A DNA stretch of 64,000 bases from Gracilinanus agilis. Lineage: Eukaryota. The stretch lies in the NCBI RefSeq assembly GCF_016433145.1, contig NC_058132.1, positions 23,997,168 to 24,061,167 on the forward strand, given 5' to 3'. Position numbers and translations under genes: made by a program. Positions 5,344 through 37,600 of the stretch are shown piece after piece. The notes under the pieces are model-generated. The model worked only from the letters and a program-made list of their open reading frames with translations, ran no database searches and was not told where the DNA came from. Each line of letters opens with the position of its first letter. The stretch's first letter is position 1.

Positions 5344-5736
5344 TCACCGCTTGACCTTTCTCCCAGCCGAGTTTCGCCCGCTTCGACGGTACAGGGACTG
5401 CTGGCCCCCATTGAGCGGGCAGTACTTGAGGGTGTGGGCCAGCCCCCCAGTGGCTCCACACAGCGGGCAGACGTAATGGCGAAGGATGGGGCACACCACT
5501 ATCCCCTCGGGGGTCTTCAACAGGTGGGAGGTGTACACGTGCCGGGACTCTCCGTTGTGCTTGCAGAAGTTGCAGAGAGGCCCCCCGGCGGCCACCTGCC
5601 TCGACTGCAGAGCCTCGGCCTCCTGCCGGCCCCTCTCCCCACCCCCGGGGCCCCCTTGGCCAGAGATCACCTCCCACAGGATCTTGTTCAGATTCAAATA
5701 GTCCTTCCACATATCAAAGGGGGCTGGCAGCTGCAT
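5344..5736 (-). CDS. NANOS2: Nanos C2HC-type zinc finger 2, 130 aa, single coding exon
   Basis: N-terminal NOT1-interacting motif FDMWKDYLNL. Twin CCHC finger (CNFCKHNGESRHVY...CPILRHYVCPLC...HTLKYCP). NANOS2-typical C-terminus QSLYRRSGRNSAGRKVKR. Synteny with NOVA2. Confidence 0.98.
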   Translation of the reverse strand: MQLPAPFDMWKDYLNLNKILWEVISGQGGPGGGERGRQEAEALQSRQVAAGGPLCNFCKHNGESRHVYTSHLLKTPEGIVVCPILRHYVCPLCGATGGLAHTLKYCPLNGGQQSLYRRSGRNSAGRKVKR

Positions 5737-9048: not shown

Positions 9049-10350
9049 ACCTAGGGACTCCTCCCTGTTTTTCAGTTTGCCTATCAGCATAAAAAGAGGG
9101 TAGATTGAGTTCTGATATTAACACACCATTCTCTGACCTAAGATTTCATGTCCAATAACATTTTTTAAACCCTTACCTTCTGACTTAAGAGTCAATACTG
9201 AGAATTGGTTTCAAAGCAGAAGAGTGGTTGGGCAATGGGGGTTAAGTGACTTGCCCAAGGTCACCCAGCTAGGAAGTCATCTGAGGCAAGATTTGAATCT
9301 AGGACCCTCCTGTTTCTAAGTTTGGTTCTCAATCCACTGAGCCACCTAGCTATCCCCCTGACTATAACATTCTAACAGTGTCAGAACCTGATAACCTGGG
9401 ACGGACTTCAGGTCAAAGTTTCACCTGCATCTCCTGGGATCACTTCCTGTCCTCATTCCCCACCATCTCTTCTTCCTCTATTCTATTTGGACTGTAGAAG
9501 TCCAGTACTTCCTCTCCCACATACCTGTCATCTAGTCTTCTCCATATATCAGCAGCCCTTTTAAAGGGAGGCGAGGCAGGAGCCACACACCTGACCTCGC
9601 CAACCCTTTTGACAGTGGGAGAAACTGAGACCAAAAGAGCGATTTCCCAAGGCTACCCAAGGGAGGCCAGACAGAGATCTCATCCAATCCAGAGCTCCTT
9701 CCGCCTCAACCAAAAAGGCGAATGCCTTGAGACAATGAAGGATGCGGAAATGGAGATAGGAGACTGAAATAAAGTGGGAGACCTTTGGAGAAAGGGGTGG
9801 AAGCGGGGAGAGTGAGAGCAATACTGTCCATTCCTGGTTTCTGGTTTTTTTTTTTTTTTTTTTTTGCCTAGTGCTCTGTGACAGGTGATGGTGGGACTGC
9901 AGCGGCTGGTGGTTGTTTCCTGGACTTGAGGTAGTGAGTGAGGGGGGGTGCGGTGGAGGATGGAGACCCCGGGCCTGCTAGTTACATTGCGGATCTTCCT
10001 GTCCAGATCCCTGGTAACAGTTACAGCTCCGGCCTCCGGTTCTCGCCCCAATTCGCCCCAGTGCTCTTATTCCACCCAAGGGACAGCCTGCTTCTCCAGT
10101 TCCAGACCCCGCCCCCCTCTCTAGACCCCTCTTCTCTCCCCTCCTGGGCCTGTGAAGCCCACCCCTGCTCCCACTTTCCCCCCCACCCTCTCTAAGGCCA
10201 CGCCCTTGGAATGCCTCCCCCCTCCCCCCATGGGCCTCTAGTTTTCCCCGCTGAAGGTCCCACCCTGGACCCCGCCCCCCTCGAAAACTTATCACGTCCC
10301 TCAGAAGCACATAATTGGGAAGCGGAGGGGGTCCCAGCCCCGGAGAGGAG

Positions 10351-10356
10351 TTTATT
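10351..10356 (-). terminator. AATAAA of the zipper gene short isoform
   Basis: Canonical hexamer about 60 nt after the predicted stop. Confidence 0.6.
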
Positions 10357-10416
10357 GACCCCCGGAGGGGGTTTGTTTCCGTGGGGGGACGGGGAGGTGC
10401 ATCCGGCCTCGGGGAC

Positions 10417-10447
10417 TCACGGGAGCCGCCGCCCTGTGTTCGCAGCC
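10417..10447 (-). CDS. Zipper gene exon 9 (AANTGRRLP-stop)
   Basis: Acceptor ctcttgtctctctcacctggggctcccacttcag. TGA at 10419-10417 overlaps a GTGAGT donor. Confidence 0.72.
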
Positions 10448-13169
10448 CTGAAGTGGGAGCCCCAGGTGAGAGAGACAAGAGTGGGAAGAGATGTCACACT
10501 CGGGCGGCTCCAGGCCAGTCCCTCCGCCGAGGCTCCCCCCCCACCGCGCCACCCGCCCCATATCCCCCACCAGCCGCCTGCCCCTCTCTCCTTTCCTTGA
10601 AGACCGGGGCCAGCGGCCACACCTTTTGCTCTCTTTGTGTTCGTGGTTCGATCGGTTTTCAGGACAGGTGCAAGAACCTTTGGTCGAGGAGGGAGAAGAA
10701 GGTGGAGTTACGGAGGGGGCGGAGGCGCCCTCGGCCACCCCACCCCCACAGCCCTCCCTGCCAACCACACACACACTCACACAGACGCTCCTCCAGCGTG
10801 TAGATGTCGTCTTGCTGCGGACAGAGCGGGAAACTGGGGCTCAGGGGCCCATCGCCCCCGCCTCAACCCCTCCCGCCCCCCAGATCCCCGCGCTGGACAG
10901 CTCAGCCGAAGGCTCCCTACGCCCCGCCCACCAACAAGAAAGTCACCGCCCCTTCATTTGCATAACCCCCCTCCAAGCCCGGCCTCTTCTTGGTCCCGTT
11001 CCTCCTTTCTCACCAGAGATTCGTGCCGCTCCTTCAGCTTCAGAATTTTCTTTTTTATCTTGTCATTGTCCCTGTGGGGACAGGGCGGGGGGCAGACAAG
11101 TGGGGGAGGGGCCCGGGCTGGGGCACACCCTCCTCTCCTCCTCCTCCTCCTCTCTAACTCAACTTCTTCTCCGGGACCACCGCCCCCCTCCCTCAGCTCG
11201 GGCTCTTCCTCGCTTGAACTCCCCAGTTCTGCTCGGCCTTCGGGGGGTGCAGAAGAAGGGCAGGCCTCAAGGAATACCCCCTCCCCTTTCTGTCGCAAAC
11301 TGAGTTGGACGCCCCCCCTCCCCACCTCGCCTCCCGTCCGGAAACCCGCCGCCCCACTGGAAAACTCATCTCGCCCTTAAGAAGCGGAGAGCGGGCGTGG
11401 GAGGGGGCGGGGATCCCTCCTCCCCCAGCCTCCGTCAGCTCCGCTGTCTTCTCCCTCCGAGGGCTTGGGGCTAGACTTGGGTTTGGGGGTGCTCACCTGA
11501 GCAGTACCTCTTCCGTGGATCTCAGGACTGGGATTAGGTGAAGAGAATGGCATTAGCGAGCTGGAGCCTGCCCCCCGCCTACCTGCTGCCCTCCTCTCCC
11601 CCGCTAGGTGGTACTTTATAAAAGGCTTTGGCTCGGAGGGGCTGAATGTTAACACTTTCCAACAAGTCTTAGAACCTAAAGCAGAATGATCGTCAGAACT
11701 GGGAGCGACCTTAGAGCACGAGAGAGCCCTGAATGGCAGAACCGGGGGGAGGCTCTGCCATTCAGTCCTCTGGGGGAGTCTGAAAGCTTAAGAGGAAGGG
11801 GACTCGGTCCCAGGTCACATGGGTTGAGAGGCTAGAGATGAGGGCTTGTGTCCTGCGGGGAGGGCGGGGAGGTCAATTGAACCCAAACAGCTCCAAACAA
11901 AGGTGGCAACAGGGGATGAGACCAGGGGAGCAGGTTGGCTCACCATCATTCTCCTCTTGCAACTTCTCATTCTGGGAGGTCGATGGATCCAGGACCGGAA
12001 GGGATAAGAGAGGGGGGCATGAGACCTTGTTTTCTTGCCTCTCTTCTCTGCCCTGTGGTCCCCTTAGGTGACCTGAACTGGACTTAATCTCTGCTCTTAA
12101 CCCTAACCTCAGTTTACCAGAACCCCTAAAATCTGCTATTACAATCTAAATATGATTATAATTTCCAGGAGAGTTAGACACTCATGTAGCTAGAGGACAG
12201 GAAGTCCTGGGTTCCAATCTGGCCATTGACACTTCCTAGCTGTGTGACCCTGGGCAAGTCACTTAATCCGAATTATCTTACTGCTCTTCTCCCTGGAACT
12301 GATACACAGCACTGATTCTAAGATGGAAGGTAAGGGTTAAAAAAAAACAAAAAAGGATGCTGATCTCATTCTAACTTTAAGTCTAACCCAAGACCCTATT
12401 GATATCACTAACCCTAACCACGTCTGTGAGTTTCTTAAGGCATCCTTCACTCCTACTTTCAGCCCCAATCCTAGCCCCAGCCTAGCCCCCATAACCCTAA
12501 CCCTAGCTTGTCTTCGAAGGGACTCTGACATCTCTGGACTTGCACTTACTACTCTCTACCCCCAAAACACCTTTGTCTCGAACCTGCAGAACCTGCTTGA
12601 TTGTCTGCCCAGTCTCTAACCTTCCCCCAGTTTGCCAGCTTCAAATCCTAATTGAGACTCCTAATATTTAATCCTCATCCTGACCTTAACCGAGGAAGGG
12701 ATCTCCTGGTTAAGGGGACTCTACTGTAGCACGACAAGGGAGGTAGCTTGTGGAGTGGCCGGTAGCCAGGGCTGGCTGTGGGGGGAAGCCCCTGCTAAAT
12801 GGTGTGTGAAGCTTCCCTCCCTCTCCATCCCACCCCCAGTGTCCCCCAGGGCCAGGCCCATGAACCCACCAGTTTTTTCAGGTTAGCATTGGCTGCCTGT
12901 AGACACTTGATCTTCTCCATCTGTGGAGGGAACGGCTGGGAGGCTCTAGGGCTTGGGTTCCTTTCCCCTCAGGTGCAGGACCCTCCCCAAACACCTGTTC
13001 CCCTGGGACCCTGTACCCCACTCCCACCTCCCCCTCTTTCTTTCCCTCCCAAGGGTCTGGGTCCTTCCTGGGTCAGAATGGAGATGGGGTTCGGGGAGAG
13101 GAGCAGTAGCCTCACCAGTGCACAGTTTCTCCTCTCTAGAGACACGGATTGAGTCCCTCGGGCAGCCAT
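10417..13169 (-). CDS. Unrecognised multi-micro-exon gene encoding a 113-aa leucine-zipper protein: MAARGTQSVSLERRNCALMEKIKCLQAANANLKKLNEKLQEENDVLRSTEEVLLRDNDKIKKKILKLKERHESLQDDIYTLEERLCSCTCPENRSNHEHKESKRAANTGRRLP
   Basis: Coding exons 13169-13116, 12920-12870, 11971-11944, 11527-11497, 11071-11014, 10814-10781, 10677-10623 and 10447-10417 (54+51+28+31+58+34+55+31=342 nt). All introns are GT-AG, phases match (0,0,1,2,0,1,2), there is no internal stop, and the heptad register is kept across junctions. Confidence 0.85.
10623..10677 (-). CDS. Zipper gene exon 8 (CSCTCPENRSNHEHKESKR)
   Basis: Pyrimidine tract ccttcttctccctcctcgaccaaag, donor AAG|gtgtgg (weaker); 55 nt, phases 1-2 fit both neighbours. 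Confidence 0.7.
10781..10814 (-). CDS. Zipper gene exon 7 (QDDIYTLEERL)
   Basis: Acceptor tttcccgctctgtccgcag, donor TGT|gtgagt; 34 nt. Confidence 0.87.
11014..11071 (-). CDS. Zipper gene exon 6 (DNDKIKKKILKLKERHESL)
   Basis: Acceptor ccgccctgtccccacag, donor CTG|gtgaga; 58 nt. Confidence 0.87.
11497..11527 (-). CDS. Zipper gene exon 5 (VLRSTEEVLLR)
   Basis: Acceptor ctcttcacctaatcccag, donor CAG|gtgagc; 31 nt. Confidence 0.85.
11944..11971 (-). CDS. Zipper gene exon 4 (NEKLQEEND)
   Basis: Long pyrimidine tract ending cctcccag, donor ATG|gtgagc; 28 nt. Confidence 0.85.
12870..12920 (-). CDS. Zipper gene exon 3 (MEKIKCLQAANANLKKL)
   Basis: Acceptor ccgttccctccacag, donor CTG|gtgggt; 51 nt, phase 0-0. 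Confidence 0.85.
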
Positions 13170-13174
13170 GCGAG
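13116..13174 (-). CDS. Zipper gene exon 2 (ATG at 13169; MAARGTQSVSLERRNCAL)
   Basis: Acceptor atttttgtccctccccag, donor CTG|gtgagg. In-frame TAG upstream once joined to the donor at 13286. Confidence 0.8.
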
Positions 13175-13280
13175 CTGGGGAGGGACAAAAATGGCTCAAG
13201 AGGCTGCAGAGGATGGGCTCTAACCTATGACTCTACTCCCCTTAATATATCCCGTGTATCCTTTCCATCCCCCTCTGAGC

Positions 13281-13420
13281 CTCACCAGCCTTGGACTAGG
13301 GGAAAGGGGGTGGGGGTCACTAACTATCCTCTCCAGAGTCTGGACCCCTCCCACCAGGCCCCGCCCAGGCAGGAGGCCTCCCCACTTTGTGTTGTCACAT
13401 AATGGCTGTGAGGTCATAAG
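13281..13420 (-). promoter_or_regulatory. Putative promoter and non-coding exon 1 of the zipper gene
   Basis: Donor CTG|gtgagg at 13286/13285, GC box ggccccgccc at 13357-13366, CRE-like TGAGGTCA at 13409-13416. Confidence 0.55.
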
Positions 13421-13559
13421 GAGATTTCCTGGTTGTGGAGGAAAGGAGATGGAAGAGACAGGCTGGATCTGGGGCTTTGAGGCTTGTGTAGTGGGGTGTA
13501 TCAAAGTCCCTGTCATGGTCCATAAAAAGGAAAGTATGTCAGGAAGAGTTAGGTACACA

Positions 13560-14130
13560 CGTGCAGACTCAAAGAAACAGAGACTCGGGGAGATATGGAA
13601 GACTGAGGAACAAAAAAGAGGAAAGGAGAAACAAAGGGAGAGGACACAGAGACAGAGGAGGAAGACTGAGGCACAGAGAGGGCACAGGGACAAGAAAAAG
13701 GAAACAGAGGGACAGAGAGGAGGGAGATGGAGCAACAAAAGAAAAGGACATTGAGGAGGGAGACTGAGGGACACAGAAGGCACAGGGACAGGAGGGGACC
13801 CTGAGGAGGGAAACAGAGGCACAGAGAAAGAGTTCAGGGACAGGACGGGACATGGAGGGAAACAGAGGAGCAATAGAGAGAAGGATATTGAGGAGGGAGA
13901 CTGAAGGACAGAGACAGCACAGTAGGACAGAGAGGAACACCATCCAGGGATGGAGGTGACATTAAGGGATAGTGAGGGATAAAGAAGACAGAGATTGAAG
14001 GACAAATAGGGGATACTGAGGGAGAGAAAAGAGAGAGATTTGAGGGATAGAGTGGAGACACTAAGGAAGAGAGGGACAAGACCAAGGGGGACAACCAGCA
14101 ACAGAGGGACCAAGGAGGGATTTGATAGGA
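13560..14130. repeat. Purine-rich low-complexity block (GGGACAGAG/GAGGAGGGAGACTGA-like units) just upstream of the zipper-gene promoter
   Basis: Strong strand asymmetry; explains the spurious long ORFs at 13220-14161. Confidence 0.75.
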
Positions 14131-16475
14131 AGACTAAAGACCAGAACTTAAACTTCTTCATCCTTTGTAGCTGGCACTATCCCATGTCTATATGGCACTT
14201 AAAGGTTGGCAAAGTGTTTTACAGATATTTATCTCATTTGATCTTTACGACAACCATGGGAAGGAGTGGCAGTTATTCCCATTTTCAGATGAAATCTGGT
14301 CTACTCTCCTTGAGTTCTCCTATCTCTGCCTTTATCCCTGCATCTTCCTGCCCTTCTCTCCCAATGACCTTAAGTGAGCATGCCTGCCTCTCTGGGCCTG
14401 TCTATCCAGTGTCCCTGATCTCTGTCTTCTCTGGGCTTTTTGTTTCATCATCTTTCTGCCTCTTTGGTCCTTTAGGCTCTCAGCTTCTGTCTCTTTTATC
14501 TCTCTCCTCCATTCTCTTTGATTTCCCTATCCCTTTGGGGCCATGTTTCTGGGGCCTCTTTGTTTTTCTGGGTATCCATAGATCTCTTCCTGGATGATCA
14601 GGGTCTCCTTTCCTAGACCAGTCAATCAGGGCTCCGATCATCATCTTCCCCTCTGTCATCTCATTTCAACCTTGATGGATCTTGGCTGGTAGTTTTCTAC
14701 TTCCTACTTAAATCCTGGGTCTTCTTTTTTTTTTTTTTTTCCATCCAGGCACTCCCCATAATATCCCTTATAGAAATGTCATAGATCCCTGAAGTCCAGT
14801 GCCCTCATTTTACAGATGAGGAAACTGAAGCCCATACAGGGGAAGGGGCACGACAGGCATCACACAGTGAGTAGATTCAAGACTTGTACTTGAGTCCTTG
14901 GACTTTCCATCATATCAGGCTGTTTTCTCCCTTCTTAGCCAGGAAGCACCTTCCTAGGCTGGAGTGCATGAGGGAGACCACCACATGGATCCATTTGGTT
15001 TTTCCTCCACCCCTGCCCCCTGCCTCAGCCCCCAAACCAACAACCACCCTTCTTTCTTCCCTCCTGTCCCCTCCATCCCAACACCCAATTCTGTTTAGTC
15101 CCTTTTGATTTAAAAAAATAATAAACAAACCACACAGACCACCAAGATATCCCCTCCAGAAAATCCTCCTAACCTGGGTAGGTGGAAATGGAAGAAATTA
15201 ACCCCATCTCCCACTCTTTGCCTTGATCATCCCCTTAGGACCCTTTTGAAGGTGTTTGTAGGACCAGGGGTGGGAAGAGAATTCCAGGGACACTTCCATG
15301 AATGGAACCCACATCTCTTATGGAGGAGAGGGAGAGAGGGCATAATGTTCGATGGTGATGATGGAGATGTTGGTAGTTTATCTTACCTTTCCTCACTCCT
15401 CCTGTCTGTCTGTCTGACCTAATGTCTGAGCAGATCTCTCCTACACTGTTCTATCTACATTTCTTCCAATTCCATTTTGTCTTTGTCTCCAGTCTCCATC
15501 TCTTTCCTGTCTCTTTCTCTTTGCACCTTGGTCTTTATGGAATTGTAGACTCTAGACCTGGAAGGGATCCAGCAACCTTGTTTTTTCAGATGGTTTTTCA
15601 GCCAAGAGATGTTAAGAGATTTAACCTTTCCCAGTTTTTTTGCCTTTCATTGTCTCAACAGATTATGATTTTGTTTTTGAGCCTAGAAGCCTTTAGGGAC
15701 TATCTAGTTCAATCTTTTCATTTTACAAAATGGGAAACTGAGGTCTGGAGAAGAAGAAGCCACTGGCCAAATGTTCCACAGTGACTCAGAAGGCAGTCAG
15801 GCTGAGGCTCAAGGCTCTCTCATTCCAGGATGACTGATGCTCCATCTGTCTTTCCTACTTTGATCTTTCCTCCTCTGGACATCTGTCCCAGTGTCTCCCT
15901 CTTCCCACTCGGTCCCTCATCTCTTTCATGTTTCAGACCCACTGGCAGGACCTTCTGTGCCTTTCCACCTCTGTCCCTTTGATGCGTGTCTACACCTGTT
16001 TGTTTCTATATATTGGGATCCTTCTCTGCCTGCGTGTCTGTCACTTGGTGTGTTCCTAATAGGACATCTCTCTGGTTTCGTCCGGGGGACTCAGTTGGGG
16101 TGCGGGGAGCGTGTGGTTCTGATCGCCTCCCGTTGCTGCGGTACCCTCTCTCTCCCTGCCCCTTCTTGGGCTTTGCCCAGAGACCCTGTTGGAATGAGGT
16201 CTTCCTCGACCCCAGCCCCATGCCCAGGGCCCCAGGCGGGGGTGTCCACCTCCCACCCAGACCCCTTTGCCCTCAGTTCCCCCAGGATCCCTGGAGGAGC
16301 TTGCCCGGTCCAGATCCCTAGGGATCCCCCAGCTCCCCCCTGGAGTTCTCCCTCCCCTCCTCCCCAGGGTTCAGGGGTGGTGAGGGGAGTGAGGGGGAAT
16401 GGGTTAAGAGAGGTGCGCGTGTCGTGGGATGGAAAGCAAAGAACACAGCGTTAGACACGAATGTAGAGATGGACG

Positions 16476-16481
16476 TTTATA
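16476..16481 (-). terminator. Candidate distal NOVA2 poly(A) signal (variant TATAAA)
   Basis: Preceded by a U-run and followed by GU-rich gtgtctaacgctgtgttctttgc. Implies a 3' UTR of about 6.9 kb. Confidence 0.45.
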
Positions 16482-16792
16482 ACGGCAAAAAAAGGGTGAG
16501 TCACTGGGGGAAGGGAGGCATGTGGGGGGAGGGGGACTCAGAGAGGGAGGAGGGTCATGGAGCTAATACACAGAGCGCTATCCACACAACGGACACTGGG
16601 CAGTGGGGGGAGGGGGAGGGAGAGAGGGGCCACGGCCCAGGCATGGCAATGGGGGAGTGTTGAGTGGGGAAGTGGCGGCGAACCAAGGTCCAGACAGCGG
16701 GCGGCGGCTTGGGCGAGGGACGAGACCAGTAAGAGGAGGGGAGGGGAGAGAGAGAGAGAAGAGATGAGAGGAAGTGGGAGGAGGGAGGAGAG

Positions 16793-16796
<4 letters not shown>

Positions 16797-16850
<54 letters not shown>

Positions 16851-16862
16851 CAGAGACAGAGA
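16797..16862. repeat. (GA)n microsatellite
   Basis: Directly visible. Confidence 0.95.
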
Positions 16863-18421
16863 GAGTTTGGATGGAGGGATTGGAGGCATACCATGGGATG
16901 GGGAGATGGGGGTGGGGGGGTGGGCAACTTGGCCCCTGACCTCGGACCCCAGATCCCTCCTCCCCCTAACCAGGGCATCCTCCAGAGAGGTCTCCCCAAA
17001 CCAGCTATGCTGGAAGATGGCATCAGTTGCCATGGAAGGGATATAGTAGACCACCAACCTCCCCCTCCTAGAAGGGGGTGGATGGGATACTCCCAAACCT
17101 CTCCCAAAGAATCCCAGAATCTTAGGGTTATAGATTCTTTGACTCTTTGACCCTAGTATTCTCAGAACCAGAGAACCTTAGAACCTAGAATGTTAGCGCT
17201 GGAAAGGCCCTTAGAGACCATTTAGTCAACACGCTCGTTTTACAGATGGGGAAGTTGAGACCCTGAGGCCTGAGAACAGGATTTAGAATCCACATCAACC
17301 CCCTCCATCTTTAATACTGTTGTTTTGGGATCCTATGAAACAGGGACCCAAGAGTGTGTGTGTGTATGGGAGGGGGACAGGGTGTAACTAGGAGCTGGGG
17401 GACCTGCCCCCCCCAAAAACAACCAGCATGGTATTGCTGCCTCAAGTTGGCTGAGATGCCAAACACAGGAAAAAAATGATTACCCATCCCCCTGGCTCAT
17501 TCCCAGTACAAAAGAGATTATTTACAATGGAGGGATGGGGAGGAGAGGGAGGGAGGGAAAGGCTCAGGAGTAGGAGTGGAGGGGGGTCTTGAAGAGGCAC
17601 CCCCACCTCCTCCTCCCACTGATGACAAGTCTTCAAACATAGAAATTCAGCCAGTTTTTATATATAGATATTTATATAGAATCTCTTGGAGGGGGGAAGG
17701 GGGCTTGCCCTGGGCTGGGGGAGGAGATGGAGGACCAAGTGCTGCCATCCCAGGTTCTCCCCACTCCTCCCTGTCCCTCTTCCCACCCCTGACACACAGC
17801 TTTCTGTGGGATGGACAACAGAGAGGGTTAAAAAAGTTCAATGAGAGGTCAGAGGAAAAGGATTCGACAGCCTGAAGATGAGCCTGCAGTTCCAAGTGGC
17901 TTGGAGGAGGTGGGCGGTGGGTGATGGAGTCCTCGGTGGTGATGGAACCACTTGGAGGAGGGAATGAACGGTTGGTGGTGTGGGGGAGAGGAGGGGAGAG
18001 AAGGTGGGAAAGAGAAGGGGGAGGTTAAAGGGTCCCCCCCAAGGACTCCAGGAAAAGATGCTATCCTGAATTGGGGGGGGAGCATTGAGGAAAGGGTTAA
18101 AAGCCATGAACTCCCCTCCTCCCTAGCACCTCCAAAAGCTTGTGAGGCACCTCTCTCCTCCAAAGTGGGCTTAGCTTTCACAACAGCCCACCTTGGCGGT
18201 GTCCCAAGAACCAGATATGGGCACAAAACAACCCAGCACCTGTCATGGTGCCCTACATGTAATAGGTACTTGATGCCCGATCAATTGGTGAACTCCCTTT
18301 TGGTATGGTTATAGCTAGGCTCAGTAGCATGCCAGCAGGCACATAATATTGCCAACAGTCCTCAGGATTTCGTGTACCTCTGCTCCAAAGCTCAAGACCC
18401 TCTTCTACCCCACACTCTCCA

Positions 18422-18422
<1 letters not shown>

Positions 18423-18462
<40 letters not shown>
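18423..18462. repeat. (CA)n microsatellite
   Basis: Directly visible. Confidence 0.95.
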
Positions 18463-18464
<2 letters not shown>

Positions 18465-21400
18465 ACCCATAAGAGATAGGAGAGAACAGGGAGGAGACAT
18501 AGAAGGACTTGAGGGAAACGACTTCAGAGGATTACAGAATGTCAGCGCTGGAAGGGCCTTTGGATAACGGCAAGTCCAAGTCCCCCATTTTACAGATGAG
18601 AAAGCTGAGGCTCAGAGAGGGGGAAACAATGTGCCCCAGAGCACAAAGTCACTGTGAATGTCAGAGCTGGAAAGGACTAGAGGCCACTGAATCCCCACCC
18701 CTTCATTTAACAGATAGGGAAACTGAGGCCCAGAGATCATCAGATGGGGATTGCCCAAGATCACATATCCAGCTGGTAGCAGAGACACACCATCCCAGTC
18801 CCCACCACCTTATAAGCTGATTTCCTCCCTAGCCAAGAGGTAAGGTCTCCATTACCTCTAATCCTCTCCCCACTAGTCTAGGGAAAGGGAGGTAGAGGAT
18901 GGGATGAGTATCTCCTCATCTAATGGGAGGAGATGGCTGGGGGCAGAGAAGTCTGCTACTTCACAACCTCCCCCTTATTGCAGTAGCAGCCCCCACCCCT
19001 AGCCTGGGGGCTGGGAATGTGAAGGGGCTGGGGGAGGGGGAAAGAAGGTGCTGGGACAGGCTGGCTCAGAGTCCCACCCCCCCAGAGGGAGACAAGGAGA
19101 TGAATTTGGCACATGTAACTTCTCTCTCTCTGAAGTACTTAGAAATTTGTGTCTGGCCTCTATCCTATCTACCAGGAAGAGAGGCGAAGGTTCCTCCCTC
19201 TCCCTGAAATTCCTTACGAACCCAGGGAGAAAAGGGTAGGGGGTTTTAGCCCCAGACTTCTTGGCCATGGGGGGAGGAGCGAGGGGGCTAGTGTTAGGAG
19301 TCTCGGGGACTGAGGGGGGAAATTTTTCTTTTTTTCTTTTCTTACAAAGCTCTTAAGAAAAGTCTGGTGGAAAGAACATGGGAATCCACGTAACGGGATC
19401 CTGGGTGGTTCAAGGACCAAAGACTTGAGGGGGGAGACAGCTCTGGCTATCCCCTGCTCCCTCCCACATGGGACTAGCACTCCCTGACAACAGCTTCTCC
19501 CCTAGAAAATTTGGCACTTTATGAAAACGATCAGGGAATCATGGAGACACAGAGCAACCTAGACAGAGACATGGAGAGGAGTAAGAGACACAGGAGGTGG
19601 GGAGGAGGGGAGGACTGTTCTGAGAGGGACAGAGACAGCCAGCCAGACCCAGGCTGTGACCCTCACATACACACACACAGGTAAAAAGAAACAGGGAGAC
19701 AGACCCTCAGACACGGGGGACAGACAGACAAGGAGACAGAGACTTGCAGGGGAGAGACACAAGGGTGAAATGAGAGAGACAAGACAGAGGGAGATCTAGC
19801 GAAGAGCAGAGGATAGAAATACAGAGAGGGTAAGAGATGTTCTGGAAGTGGAGAGAGGGATTGTAGAGGCAAGATGAGAAGTCAGGGGAGTAGGAAGAAA
19901 CTGCTAGAACAGGGAGGGCACTAGCCTTTGGCCAGTGCTTTAACCCTCAGGAGGGAAGCTTTGGAATCTCCATCAGAGCGTTCCAAGGATCTGTTACTGC
20001 CTGCCTCCCTCCAATCCCCACTTGCCAGGAAGACACACTGTCAGGGGGAAAGGCGGTGAGGCAGGAGTAGGGGACCCTGGAGAATCAGACATGAGAAAAT
20101 AAAGAGATGATAAAAAAGGGGGTGATGGGGGCACTTGGGAAAATGGGTTAAAAGAAGAACGTTAAGGTCCAAGTGGACTCCAAATGGTTGTGGAACTGGC
20201 AAAGGATCCCATGATGGGGAGGGGAAGGGGGTTAGGGGTATCTTCCTTGGCTTCAGTTAACTGTTGCCCCCTGGGGTTGGGGGACGGGTAGGGGGGCGGG
20301 GAGAAGGATTGTAAGAGCTGTGGGGAGTAGATTAAACATCTGTGGCTCAAGGGGACCCCGATTATGTCTTTAGCAATCATCTAGGCTCTGTCTACTTCCC
20401 CCTCCCCACCCCTAGCCTCTGCCCCAGGAAACACTGTAGCAAAAGGACTGAGGTCAGAACTGCAGAAGGGGCTTCTGGAGAGGAGACCACAGGCATGGGG
20501 ACAGGAAACAGCAGGAAGGGTGGGGTGGGGGCACCGTGCACAGGTGTATCCCCTTCCCATTCTCTCCTCTCTTTCCTCCTACTTTTCCACCCTGCAGGAA
20601 GCGGAAAGGGGGATGGGGATGAGAGAAGGGGAGCCTAGGTTTTCGAGCCACTCAGGACCTTCCCAAGCATCTCTACTCCCTGCCCCTCACCCACACACAC
20701 CAATTTTACAGAGAAGAAAACTGAGGCCTGGACAAATGAAGGGACTTGCCATAGTAAGTCAGGCCTAGAGCTCGGATTTCAACCAGGGTACTCTGTCTCC
20801 TTCCACAGAGTGCACCTCAGGGAGGTAGTGGATTCAAGAGAAGAAGCCAGGTGTGTGTCGTGGGGGTGGGTGGGGGGACTAAAGAGCAGGGAAGGAGGCT
20901 GTCTCTGAAGAGACATAGCCCCATGAAGGGCTGCCACTGGACCAGCACATTACAGGGGCAGTGAGCTTGGCCGTGCATGCAAATGATATGCAAATCAGCT
21001 CGGGCACCCTGGGAGGTCCCATCCTTCCCAAATCCAAAATACAGAATACTGCATTCTCAGGGGATGGGAACCCCCCTTCCCTCCCCCCTCCCCCCAAGCC
21101 GCAGGATATATATGTATATATCCTTTGTATATATAAATATACAAAGATTGGAAGAGAATTCTTTTGGCACATCTAGACCACCCTCCCTTGGAAGGAAGGG
21201 TGTAATCAGGGTCCAAGGAGTTGGTGGGGGCCAGGGTTCAGAAGGAGACAGGCTCTCCCCCCCTTCCCTGACTAGAGTCTGCGGGGAGGGTATAGAAAAA
21301 GCCACTTGGCCACCCGAGCTCCTGCCAGCATCTGGTGACCCAGTGGGGGACGTGAGCAGACAAGGTGGGAGACAAGGTCAGTGCGAGTTACCGCTATTGC

Positions 21401-23393: not shown

Positions 23394-24458
23394 TTATCCC
23401 ACTTTTTGGGGGTTCGTGGCACGGACCCCCTGCTCATAGGTGACCCTCTGGCTTATGAGATACTGTGCGGCCTGTGTGGCTGCAGGGCTGCCTGTAATGG
23501 TCACCCGCCGGTTCCGAGTGCCAGGCAGGAACTCCCCCTTCTTAGAGATCTGGATGCGGGCACCTGTCAACTCCTGGTACTCTACCAGTGTTTTCCCCCC
23601 CTTGCCCAGGATGGCACCCACGAGGTTCTCTGGCACCGCAATTTCCACCAGCTCCTTGGCGCTCTCTGCCGCCAGCTTCTCGGCTGCCAGGAACCCCCCG
23701 GCTCCTGCCCCGCCACCCCCACCGCCACCCCCCCCTGCTGCTCCCAGGTAGCCATTGGCAGCCGCTGCCAAGGCAAAGGAGCCCAGTGCCCCAGGGGGGG
23801 GTGGGGGTGGGGGTGGGGCCGCACCTGCCGCTGGCCCAGCAGCAGCCTCGCCGGCATAGGAGGCTAGTAGGTTGGCGGCGGCGGCGGCAGCTGGATTTGC
23901 CCCAGCCGCCACAGCCGCGAGGACCCCTGAGGCCGCAGCCGAGCCAAGGCCCAGGCCCAGTGAGTTGGCACTGTAGCCATAGCTGGCCAGTGTGTTGAGG
24001 GCCGTACTGATGGCCAGCAGGTCGGTCCCTGAAAAGGCCGGCAGGGCAGCAGGAAAGGCACCCACACCCGCCAGGCCCGCGGGGCCAAGGAGCCCGGAGG
24101 CGGCGGCGGCGGCGGCAGAGGCTGCGGCGGCGGCTGCTGGGAGGACATCAGCCGGGCTGGCATAGGGTGAGCCCGTGGGGTTGGAGTTGGCCACAGGCCC
24201 CGCCACATTGGCATAGCTGATGTTCAGGCAGCTGCTACTCTGCGGGTCCTCCTGCACCTTCTGGACGATGGCGGCCACAGCCTTGTGCACCTGCTCGGGC
24301 TCCCCGCTCACCGTCACCACTCGCTCCTGCAGGTTGATGCCCTCTGGTTTCTGGGACAGCTGGACCCACGCGCCTGACTGCTCCATGACTGCCTTCACCG
24401 TTGCACCCCCTTTGCCAATGATCAGACCAGCTGTGCTGTTGGGGACTATCAACTTAGC
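23394..24458 (-). CDS. NOVA2: NOVA2 exon 4 (KH2, Ala/Gly/Pro-rich linker, KH3, stop)
   Basis: [18 protein letters not shown]...[44 protein letters not shown]...NPQKVG. Total CDS 85+144+167+1065=1461 nt, giving 486 aa. Confidence 0.98.
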
Positions 24459-35995: not shown

Positions 35996-36073
35996 NNNNN
36001 NNNNNNNNNNNNNNNNNNNNNNNNNNNNNNNNNNNNNNNNNNNNNNNNNNNNNNNNNNNNNNNNNNNNNNNNN
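35996..36073. other. Assembly gap in the NOVA2 5' UTR
   Basis: Run of N. Confidence 1.
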
Positions 36074-37468: not shown

Positions 37469-37600
37469 NNNNNNNNNNNNNNNNNNNNNNNNNNNNNNNN
37501 NNNNNNNNNNNNNNNNNNNNNNNNNNNNNNNNNNNNNNNNNNNNNNNNNNNNNNNNNNNNNNNNNNNNNNNNNNNNNNNNNNNNNNNNNNNNNNNNNNNN
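37469..37600. other. Assembly gap within SINE sequence
   Basis: Run of N. Confidence 1.

Follow-up and report, generated by a model that had tools for sequence, protein, structure and literature searches.

The window analysed here is a stretch of 64,000 nucleotides (nt) from Gracilinanus agilis (assembly GCF_016433145.1, contig NC_058132.1, positions 23,997,168 to 24,061,167 of the forward strand). On its minus strand, between NOVA2 and NANOS2, lies a gene of eight micro-exons that encodes a leucine-zipper protein (Table 1). The gene was rebuilt from the window in the form given by the initial annotation: eight coding exons of 28–58 nt, running from 13169 to 10417 and bounded by GT donors and AG acceptors, are spliced into an open reading frame (ORF) of 342 nt that encodes 113 amino acids (aa). 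Each of the seven introns is GT-AG; the donor is of the GTGAG type in five of them, and the donors of exons 2 and 7 read GTGGG and GTGTG, respectively. A pyrimidine-rich tract precedes each acceptor. When all GT and AG dinucleotides of the window are ranked by a rough position-weight score, 12 of the 14 sites used in the gene stand at or above the 96th percentile, and the remaining two at the 87th–90th. The G+C content of exons 2–7 is 39–56%, against 58–70% in their flanks. As the initial annotation had described, a genomic in-frame stop precedes the ATG, here 22 codons 5' of it, and an AATAAA polyadenylation signal lies downstream of the stop codon.

Table 1. Features of the zipper gene and its surroundings, in window coordinates (UTR, untranslated region; SINE, short interspersed nuclear element).
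Feature	Position	Strand	Remarks
Exon 1, coding	13169-13116	minus	54 nt; residues 1-18; ATG at 13169; donor GTGAGG
Exon 2	12920-12870	minus	51 nt; residues 19-35; donor GTGGG
Exon 3	11971-11944	minus	28 nt; residues 36-45; phase 0 to 1
Exon 4	11527-11497	minus	31 nt; residues 45-55
Exon 5	11071-11014	minus	58 nt; residues 55-74; GC 0.41 against 0.64 in the flanks
Exon 6	10814-10781	minus	34 nt; residues 75-86; carries the most conserved motif, QDDIYxLEExLC
Exon 7	10677-10623	minus	55 nt; residues 86-104; CxCxC cluster; donor GTGTGG
Exon 8	10447-10335	minus	coding 10447-10417, 31 nt (9 codons and TGA), then a short 3' UTR; end at about 10335 estimated
Polyadenylation signal AATAAA	10356-10351	minus	58 nt 3' of the TGA
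Extension of exon 7	10622-10596	minus	27 nt; 9 extra residues, 122 aa in all
Extension of exon 2	12921-12935	minus	alternative acceptor 15 nt 5' of exon 2; 5 extra residues
Conserved upstream block, putative promoter and 5' UTR	13170-13431	minus	GC box and CRE-like motif TGACCTCA; blastn block from 13431
CRE-like octamer TGACCTCA	13400-13412	minus	within the conserved upstream block
SINE-like repeat	12190-12351		intron 2
Purine-rich tandem repeats	13638-13868		periods 39 and 50; just 5' of the gene
313-aa ORF	13220-14161	minus	spans the purine-rich tandem repeats
Block aligning with other marsupials	14143-17129		between the gene and the NOVA2 coding end
(GA)n microsatellite	16746-16865		further upstream
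ATTAAA	17315	minus	sole minus-strand poly(A) signal in 13170-18500
NANOS2 ORF	5344-5736	minus	zf-nanos, E 2e-25
NOVA2, last KH exon	23394-24452	minus	
N run	35996-36073		NOVA2 intron region
N run	37469-37600		NOVA2 intron region

The encoded protein has leucine or isoleucine at 11 consecutive d positions of the heptad repeat (L11, L18, L25, L32, L39, L46, L53, I60, L67, L74 and L81), and its a positions are N15, I22, N29, N36, N43, E50, N57, I64, H71, I78 and L85. These assignments, made in the initial annotation, all match the rebuilt protein, and the heptad register is unbroken over residues 11–85. The zipper had been said to span six exon junctions; the run from L11 to L81 crosses five.

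The preservation of such a register across independently chosen splice sites had been called very unlikely by chance. A dynamic-programming search was used to find the longest Leu/Ile heptad run that can be obtained by splicing GT..AG introns, with 38 natural tiles of 3.15 kb and 300 dinucleotide shuffles as 338 controls. With unrestricted GT and AG, the real locus yields a run of 21 heptads, and the 38 natural tiles yield 9–26 with a mean of 18. Long heptad runs can thus be spliced from every tile when any GT and AG may be used, and register preservation alone proves nothing. The claim holds in a narrower form. When the search is restricted to sites no weaker than the poorest one in the gene model, the real locus gives a run of 11, and the maximum is 6 both in the natural tiles and in the shuffles. 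The zipper exceeds chance once splice-site quality is imposed.

The loci of other species were reached through their NANOS2 proteins, each with flanks of 10 kb. Among marsupials, the window species was compared with Monodelphis, Sarcophilus (two assemblies), Macrotis and Petaurus. In all of them the eight exons are colinear and of the same lengths, and every AG and GT is retained. The 113-aa protein is unchanged in Monodelphis and Sarcophilus; the Macrotis protein differs by S73T and A106S and that of Petaurus by E98D, all of them conservative changes. Between the window and Sarcophilus, the coding sequence has 12 nucleotide differences, of which 12 are synonymous and none nonsynonymous (synonymous divergence dS 0.18, nonsynonymous divergence dN 0). 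Over the five marsupials, the variable sites comprise 21 synonymous and 3 nonsynonymous ones (P = 2.6e-11 under neutrality). In aligned columns, identity to Monodelphis is 100% in exons and 91% in introns, and identity to Sarcophilus is 96.5% and 75%, respectively. Together these comparisons bear the signature of strong purifying selection on the protein. The proposal of the initial annotation that this is a functional protein-coding gene is supported.

Conservation extends beyond the coding exons. Of 75 nt of the 3' UTR, 68–74 are identical in the other marsupials (73 in Sarcophilus), and the AATAAA is retained in all. The 270 nt 5' of the ATG match at 267 positions in Monodelphis and at 209–224 in the three Australian species. 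The CRE-like octamer within this upstream block is also present in the bilby (Macrotis lagotis). A TATA-like TATATT at 13249 was considered as a promoter element and dropped, as it is absent from the bilby.

The gene had been described as hidden and unrecognised, which is true in part. No gene is called at the locus in the window genome, Monodelphis, Sarcophilus or Petaurus, in the assemblies of the collection searched, so that annotation has indeed missed it there. In the bilby, a gene call (bilby locus L005:1945-6137) ends on the same stop codon as the eight-exon model. This gene is RefSeq LOC141509585, an "uncharacterized protein" with nine isoforms of 104–238 aa; it lies upstream of NANOS2 as in the window, its eight exons are colinear and its protein is 98% identical. 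The koala (Phascolarctos cinereus) orthologue is RefSeq LOC144454258. Together with LOC144584259 of the lizard Pogona vitticeps, these loci are orthologues of the window gene that are known as automatic "uncharacterized protein" models, and further reptiles have hypothetical or misnamed models. Literature searches with the locus identifiers, or with NANOS2, NOVA2 and coiled coil together, gave nothing relevant. The gene is unnamed and unstudied. It is not categorically new, as its product is a leucine-zipper protein and as automatic LOC models in two marsupials and scattered hypothetical models in reptiles already represent it.

The RefSeq isoforms differ from the 113-aa model at three places. 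First, most of them extend exon 7 by 27 nt, which adds nine residues and gives 122 aa; the 122-aa koala product equals the window product once the 27 nt after exon 7 are read through. The implied donor of these isoforms is AAG|GAAAGG, with GA and not GT, and all five of the marsupials compared share it. Either the intron is of the rare GA-AG kind or the models are in error here. In the bilby, four of the five changes within this extension (L005:5906-5932) are nonsynonymous. The exon 7 donor of the 113-aa model is used by bilby isoform X3. Second, some bilby isoforms use the alternative acceptor 5' of exon 2. Third, the isoforms differ at the N terminus. Some bilby isoforms splice to an acceptor, ccccag, that lies 5 nt 5' of the ATG; isoforms X4 and X5, which start MAEAR-MAARG, require this acceptor. 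The long bilby isoforms carry an N-terminal extension of 125 aa, which the window gene lacks: at about 14660, the place that corresponds to their start exon (L005:1945), the window offers no ATG and no GT donor. The extension was rejected as a part of the conserved gene. The conserved start is therefore the ATG at 13169, and the Met-Ala found there also opens the reptile proteins.

Homologues outside the marsupials were found with phmmer, using the koala protein as the query against 1.84 billion representatives of a library clustered at 50% identity. Of the 15 matches, 13 are genuine relatives in other species; the other two are the match of the bilby protein to itself (P0121) and a coiled coil from a plant, which is noise. 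The reptile homologues have E-values of 1e-26 to 1e-10 and 53–70% identity. They come from squamates (Pogona vitticeps, Podarcis lilfordi, Phrynosoma, Phrynocephalus, Lerista and the python Liasis), turtles (Lepidochelys, Caretta, Natator, Eretmochelys and Pelodiscus) and crocodilians. The last are represented by Alligator, with one hypothetical protein and two "nanos homolog 2" isoforms that are in truth the zipper gene. A word-index protein search with the 113-aa peptide was blank. This was a false negative, as phmmer found reptile homologues of 92–129 aa that share stretches of 8–11 identical residues with it, and a blank in the word-index search is thus no sign of absence. The marsupial cluster representative has 229 aa and falls outside the length band of that search.

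Gene order and exon boundaries are also shared with the reptile loci examined, those of alligator and Pogona. The order in the alligator, all on one strand, is a NOVA-like KH gene, the zipper gene, NANOS2 and CCDC61. The zipper gene of Pogona lies about 6 kb from NANOS2, and the locus tag of the Phrynocephalus homologue is adjacent to that of NANOS2 itself. The boundaries of exons 2, 5 and 6 coincide between marsupials and Pogona or alligator: the start and end of exon 2 and the 3' boundary of exon 5 are the same in Pogona, and both boundaries of exon 6 are the same in Pogona and alligator. A homologue of marsupial exon 1 is found in Pogona and also in the alligator (alligator locus L012:9386-9442), where it is missing from the models. 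The gene is therefore at least as old as the amniote ancestor. The split of mammals and reptiles took place more than 300 million years ago. The features kept across amniotes, judged only where the exons lie in correctly spliced models, are the d-position hydrophobics (mostly leucine), the a-position asparagines 15, 29, 36, 43 and 57, and the motifs LLRDN and LQDDIYxLEExLCxCxC. Beyond the cysteines, the tails of the marsupial proteins are unlike those of the reptile proteins.

Several public models of the gene are misnamed or fused (among them proteins P0132, P0141 and P0136; the alligator locus is L012:9386-11471). The two Alligator mississippiensis proteins named "nanos homolog 2 isoform X2/X4" (P0137, P0147) contain no nanos domain. 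The Podarcis model bears the name "axonemal dynein light chain domain containing 1" and the Pelodiscus model "bromodomain and WD repeat-containing protein 3-like" (BRWD3-like). One model of 440 aa, also among the phmmer matches, fuses NOVA-type KH domains to the zipper.

Other lineages gave no copy within the space searched. No placental, monotreme, bird, amphibian or fish protein is among the phmmer matches, although the 50% clustering of the library could hide a close relative. Searches by tblastn, for which marsupial, turtle and lizard sequences served as queries, detected no copy in the two 10-kb flanks of NANOS2 in pig, dugong, platypus and the gecko Heteronotia. In Pogona and alligator, these queries did pick up several colinear exons, with E-values of 1e-5 to 0.04 across species. 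Because the gecko is also blank, no match in a 10-kb flank is not proof of loss. The flanks of pig and dugong contain no alignable NOVA2 3' UTR; the placental interval is thus covered only in part and may stop short of NOVA2. The initial annotation had suggested that the gene was lost in some eutherians. The missing copy beside NANOS2 in pig and dugong agrees with this, and the reach of the flanks speaks against treating it as settled.

The neighbours of the gene were both placed by domain matches in the window, and the zipper gene does sit between NOVA2 and NANOS2, on the same strand as both, as had been proposed. NANOS2 is 97% identical to its Monodelphis counterpart. No competing ORF with a Pfam match was found on either strand over 9978-13402, and no Rfam family in the whole window. 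The 313-aa ORF that spans the tandem repeats just 5' of the gene has no Pfam match. The SINE-like repeat in intron 2 is of a kind characteristic of marsupials, and the loci of Monodelphis and Sarcophilus contain numerous copies of it, lying in either orientation. The long block at 14143-17129 can be aligned with Sarcophilus, Macrotis and Petaurus at about 74–76%, and it is probably NOVA2 3' UTR or regulatory sequence.

The AlphaFold2 model of the protein (12-sequence alignment, single chain) is one helix over residues 2–89 with a predicted local distance difference test score (pLDDT) of 95–98, followed by a disordered tail. In both the model and the sequence, the protein shows the continuous amphipathic helix and the unbroken heptad register of two-stranded parallel coiled coils. 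It matches no Pfam family at threshold. The best match is ZapB, with 22.1 bits against a cutoff of 31.5, and TSC22, Chibby, XRCC4_CC and KASH_CCD are likewise under their Pfam cutoffs. The products of bilby, Pogona and alligator likewise carry no precomputed Pfam annotation. A profile search of solved structures brought up no relative, and the ESM Atlas yielded only a generic, sub-threshold coiled-coil resemblance.

Among known systems, GCN4 and the other bZIP zippers resemble the window protein in their successive d leucines, their a-position asparagine and their continuous helix, and by this likeness a parallel two-stranded geometry would be expected. bZIP zippers usually have 4–6 heptads and one a-position asparagine. 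In contrast, the window protein has 11 heptads, five such asparagines and a CxCxC end, and it lacks a basic region. The last point agrees with the initial annotation: bZIP_1 reaches 12.6 bits (E 0.16) where its cutoff is 27.6, and only ERR (residues 12–14) precedes the zipper core. In the absence of a basic region, direct DNA binding of the bZIP type is unlikely. The TSC22/GILZ family, Chibby and SCOC are proteins of about 80–140 aa that use a dimerising zipper as an adaptor or regulator without DNA binding. The window protein is similar to them in size and in its zipper-only character. Its matches to TSC22 (E 0.79) and Chibby (E 1.2) are far under the cutoffs, and the structure of eight micro-exons and the phylogenetic range differ from theirs. 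A third likeness is to the N-terminal coiled coil of CtIP/RBBP8, which is also closely followed by a short cysteine motif, and CtIP_N (PF10482) matches residues 60–99 weakly (E 0.005, 17.2 bits against a cutoff of 27). The cysteine motif of CtIP is CxxC. The window protein has CxCxC instead, contains no other CtIP regions and drew no CtIP chain in the profile search of solved structures.

In our judgement, the locus very probably holds an intact, selectively maintained gene of eight micro-exons, as old as the amniotes, whose product of about 113 aa (or 122 aa) is one long helix with an 11-heptad zipper, a CxCxC cluster and a short disordered tail, which would form a parallel, in-register dimer and act as a dimerisation or adaptor module. 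A rival reading takes the exons for a chance assembly, or for conserved non-coding elements such as NOVA2 or NANOS2 enhancers or a non-coding RNA, with no protein made. Three observations would suit it: unrestricted GT and AG yield equally long heptad runs anywhere in the window, the neighbouring introns and flanks are also fairly well conserved, and the window genome has no annotated gene here. Such an explanation has next to no probability: the substitutions are protein-like, both over the five marsupials and against Sarcophilus; marsupials and reptiles still have exon boundaries, phases and splice dinucleotides in common; and annotated proteins of the gene exist in at least nine species. 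As far as sequence alone can refute it, it is refuted. The points that do weigh against the main reading concern the product. The 113-aa form may not be the main one, as most RefSeq isoforms carry nine residues more, and transcription is implied by the RefSeq models of bilby and koala. What is proposed here for oligomeric state, partner and cysteine function is inferred from sequence rules. In a homodimer the g/e' pairs counted from the sequence are mixed, two attractive and two repulsive, so that a homodimer is neither favoured nor excluded by them. In addition, 7 of the 11 a layers are polar, and an isolated homodimer may thus be weak.

The combination of leucine at d and asparagine at a is a hallmark of parallel two-stranded coiled coils. 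The dimer model depends on the rule for asparagine at a positions. Where two asparagines pair at these positions, they determine orientation and specificity at the expense of affinity (PMC8080620). By this rule, the helix of the window protein would pair as a parallel, in-register two-stranded coiled coil, with itself or with a dedicated hetero-partner. The five invariant a-position asparagines would fix register, orientation and partner choice at a cost in stability. Five such layers over 11 heptads suggest a specific, register-locked and not very stable dimer. An obligate heterodimer is unlikely, although it has several points in its favour. The protein would then be a decoy or inhibitor of another zipper protein, for example a bZIP factor, which it would sequester without binding DNA, in line with the dominant-negative role suggested by the initial annotation. 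The missing basic region fits this, the e and g charges give no net drive to a homodimer, and in designed coils several a-position asparagines disfavour homodimers and favour cognate pairing (PMC8080620). No partner is known, however, and one with five matching asparagines over 11 heptads would be unusual, while a parallel homodimer matches its five asparagine layers automatically.

Dimerisation of the zipper would also cluster six cysteines at its C-terminal end, where they could form a metal clasp, a disulfide clasp or an acylation site. In the acylation case the cysteine cluster could be an S-acylation site that anchors the coiled coil to a membrane, similar to SNAP-25, in which a cysteine cluster follows the first helix, and the protein would be a membrane tether or adaptor. 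The conserved CxCxC directly at the helix end, followed by a polar disordered tail, is consistent with this. There is no SNARE or other family match, and the residues that flank the cysteines are not conserved beyond marsupials; the membrane anchor is accordingly regarded as rather improbable. Under the preferred dimer model, the protein would be a dimerisation or adaptor module and not a transcription factor.

On a wider scale, a slightly less than even chance is given to the following history. An ancient amniote gene would be near-frozen in marsupials, conserved in non-avian reptiles and lost in placentals and possibly also in monotremes and birds, and it would represent a new zipper-only family with a five-asparagine ladder and a CxCxC clasp, possibly with a role in the germ line. 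The adjacency to NANOS2 and the alligator models that join both genes are weak hints of shared expression, and the germ-line role, which the initial annotation had also suggested, is itself a guess.

The missing gene calls and the mislabelled reptile models of the zipper gene should be corrected, and the apparent placental loss is directly testable. The locus also illustrates that micro-exon genes this small still escape annotation pipelines. Its product is an unusual natural coiled coil, with 11 heptads, five asparagine core layers and a cysteine clasp, and is thereby offered for the study of pairing specificity. It is a strongly conserved protein without a name, a domain, a solved structure or a paper. 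Not one residue has changed between American opossums and the Tasmanian devil, and the protein must therefore do something important.

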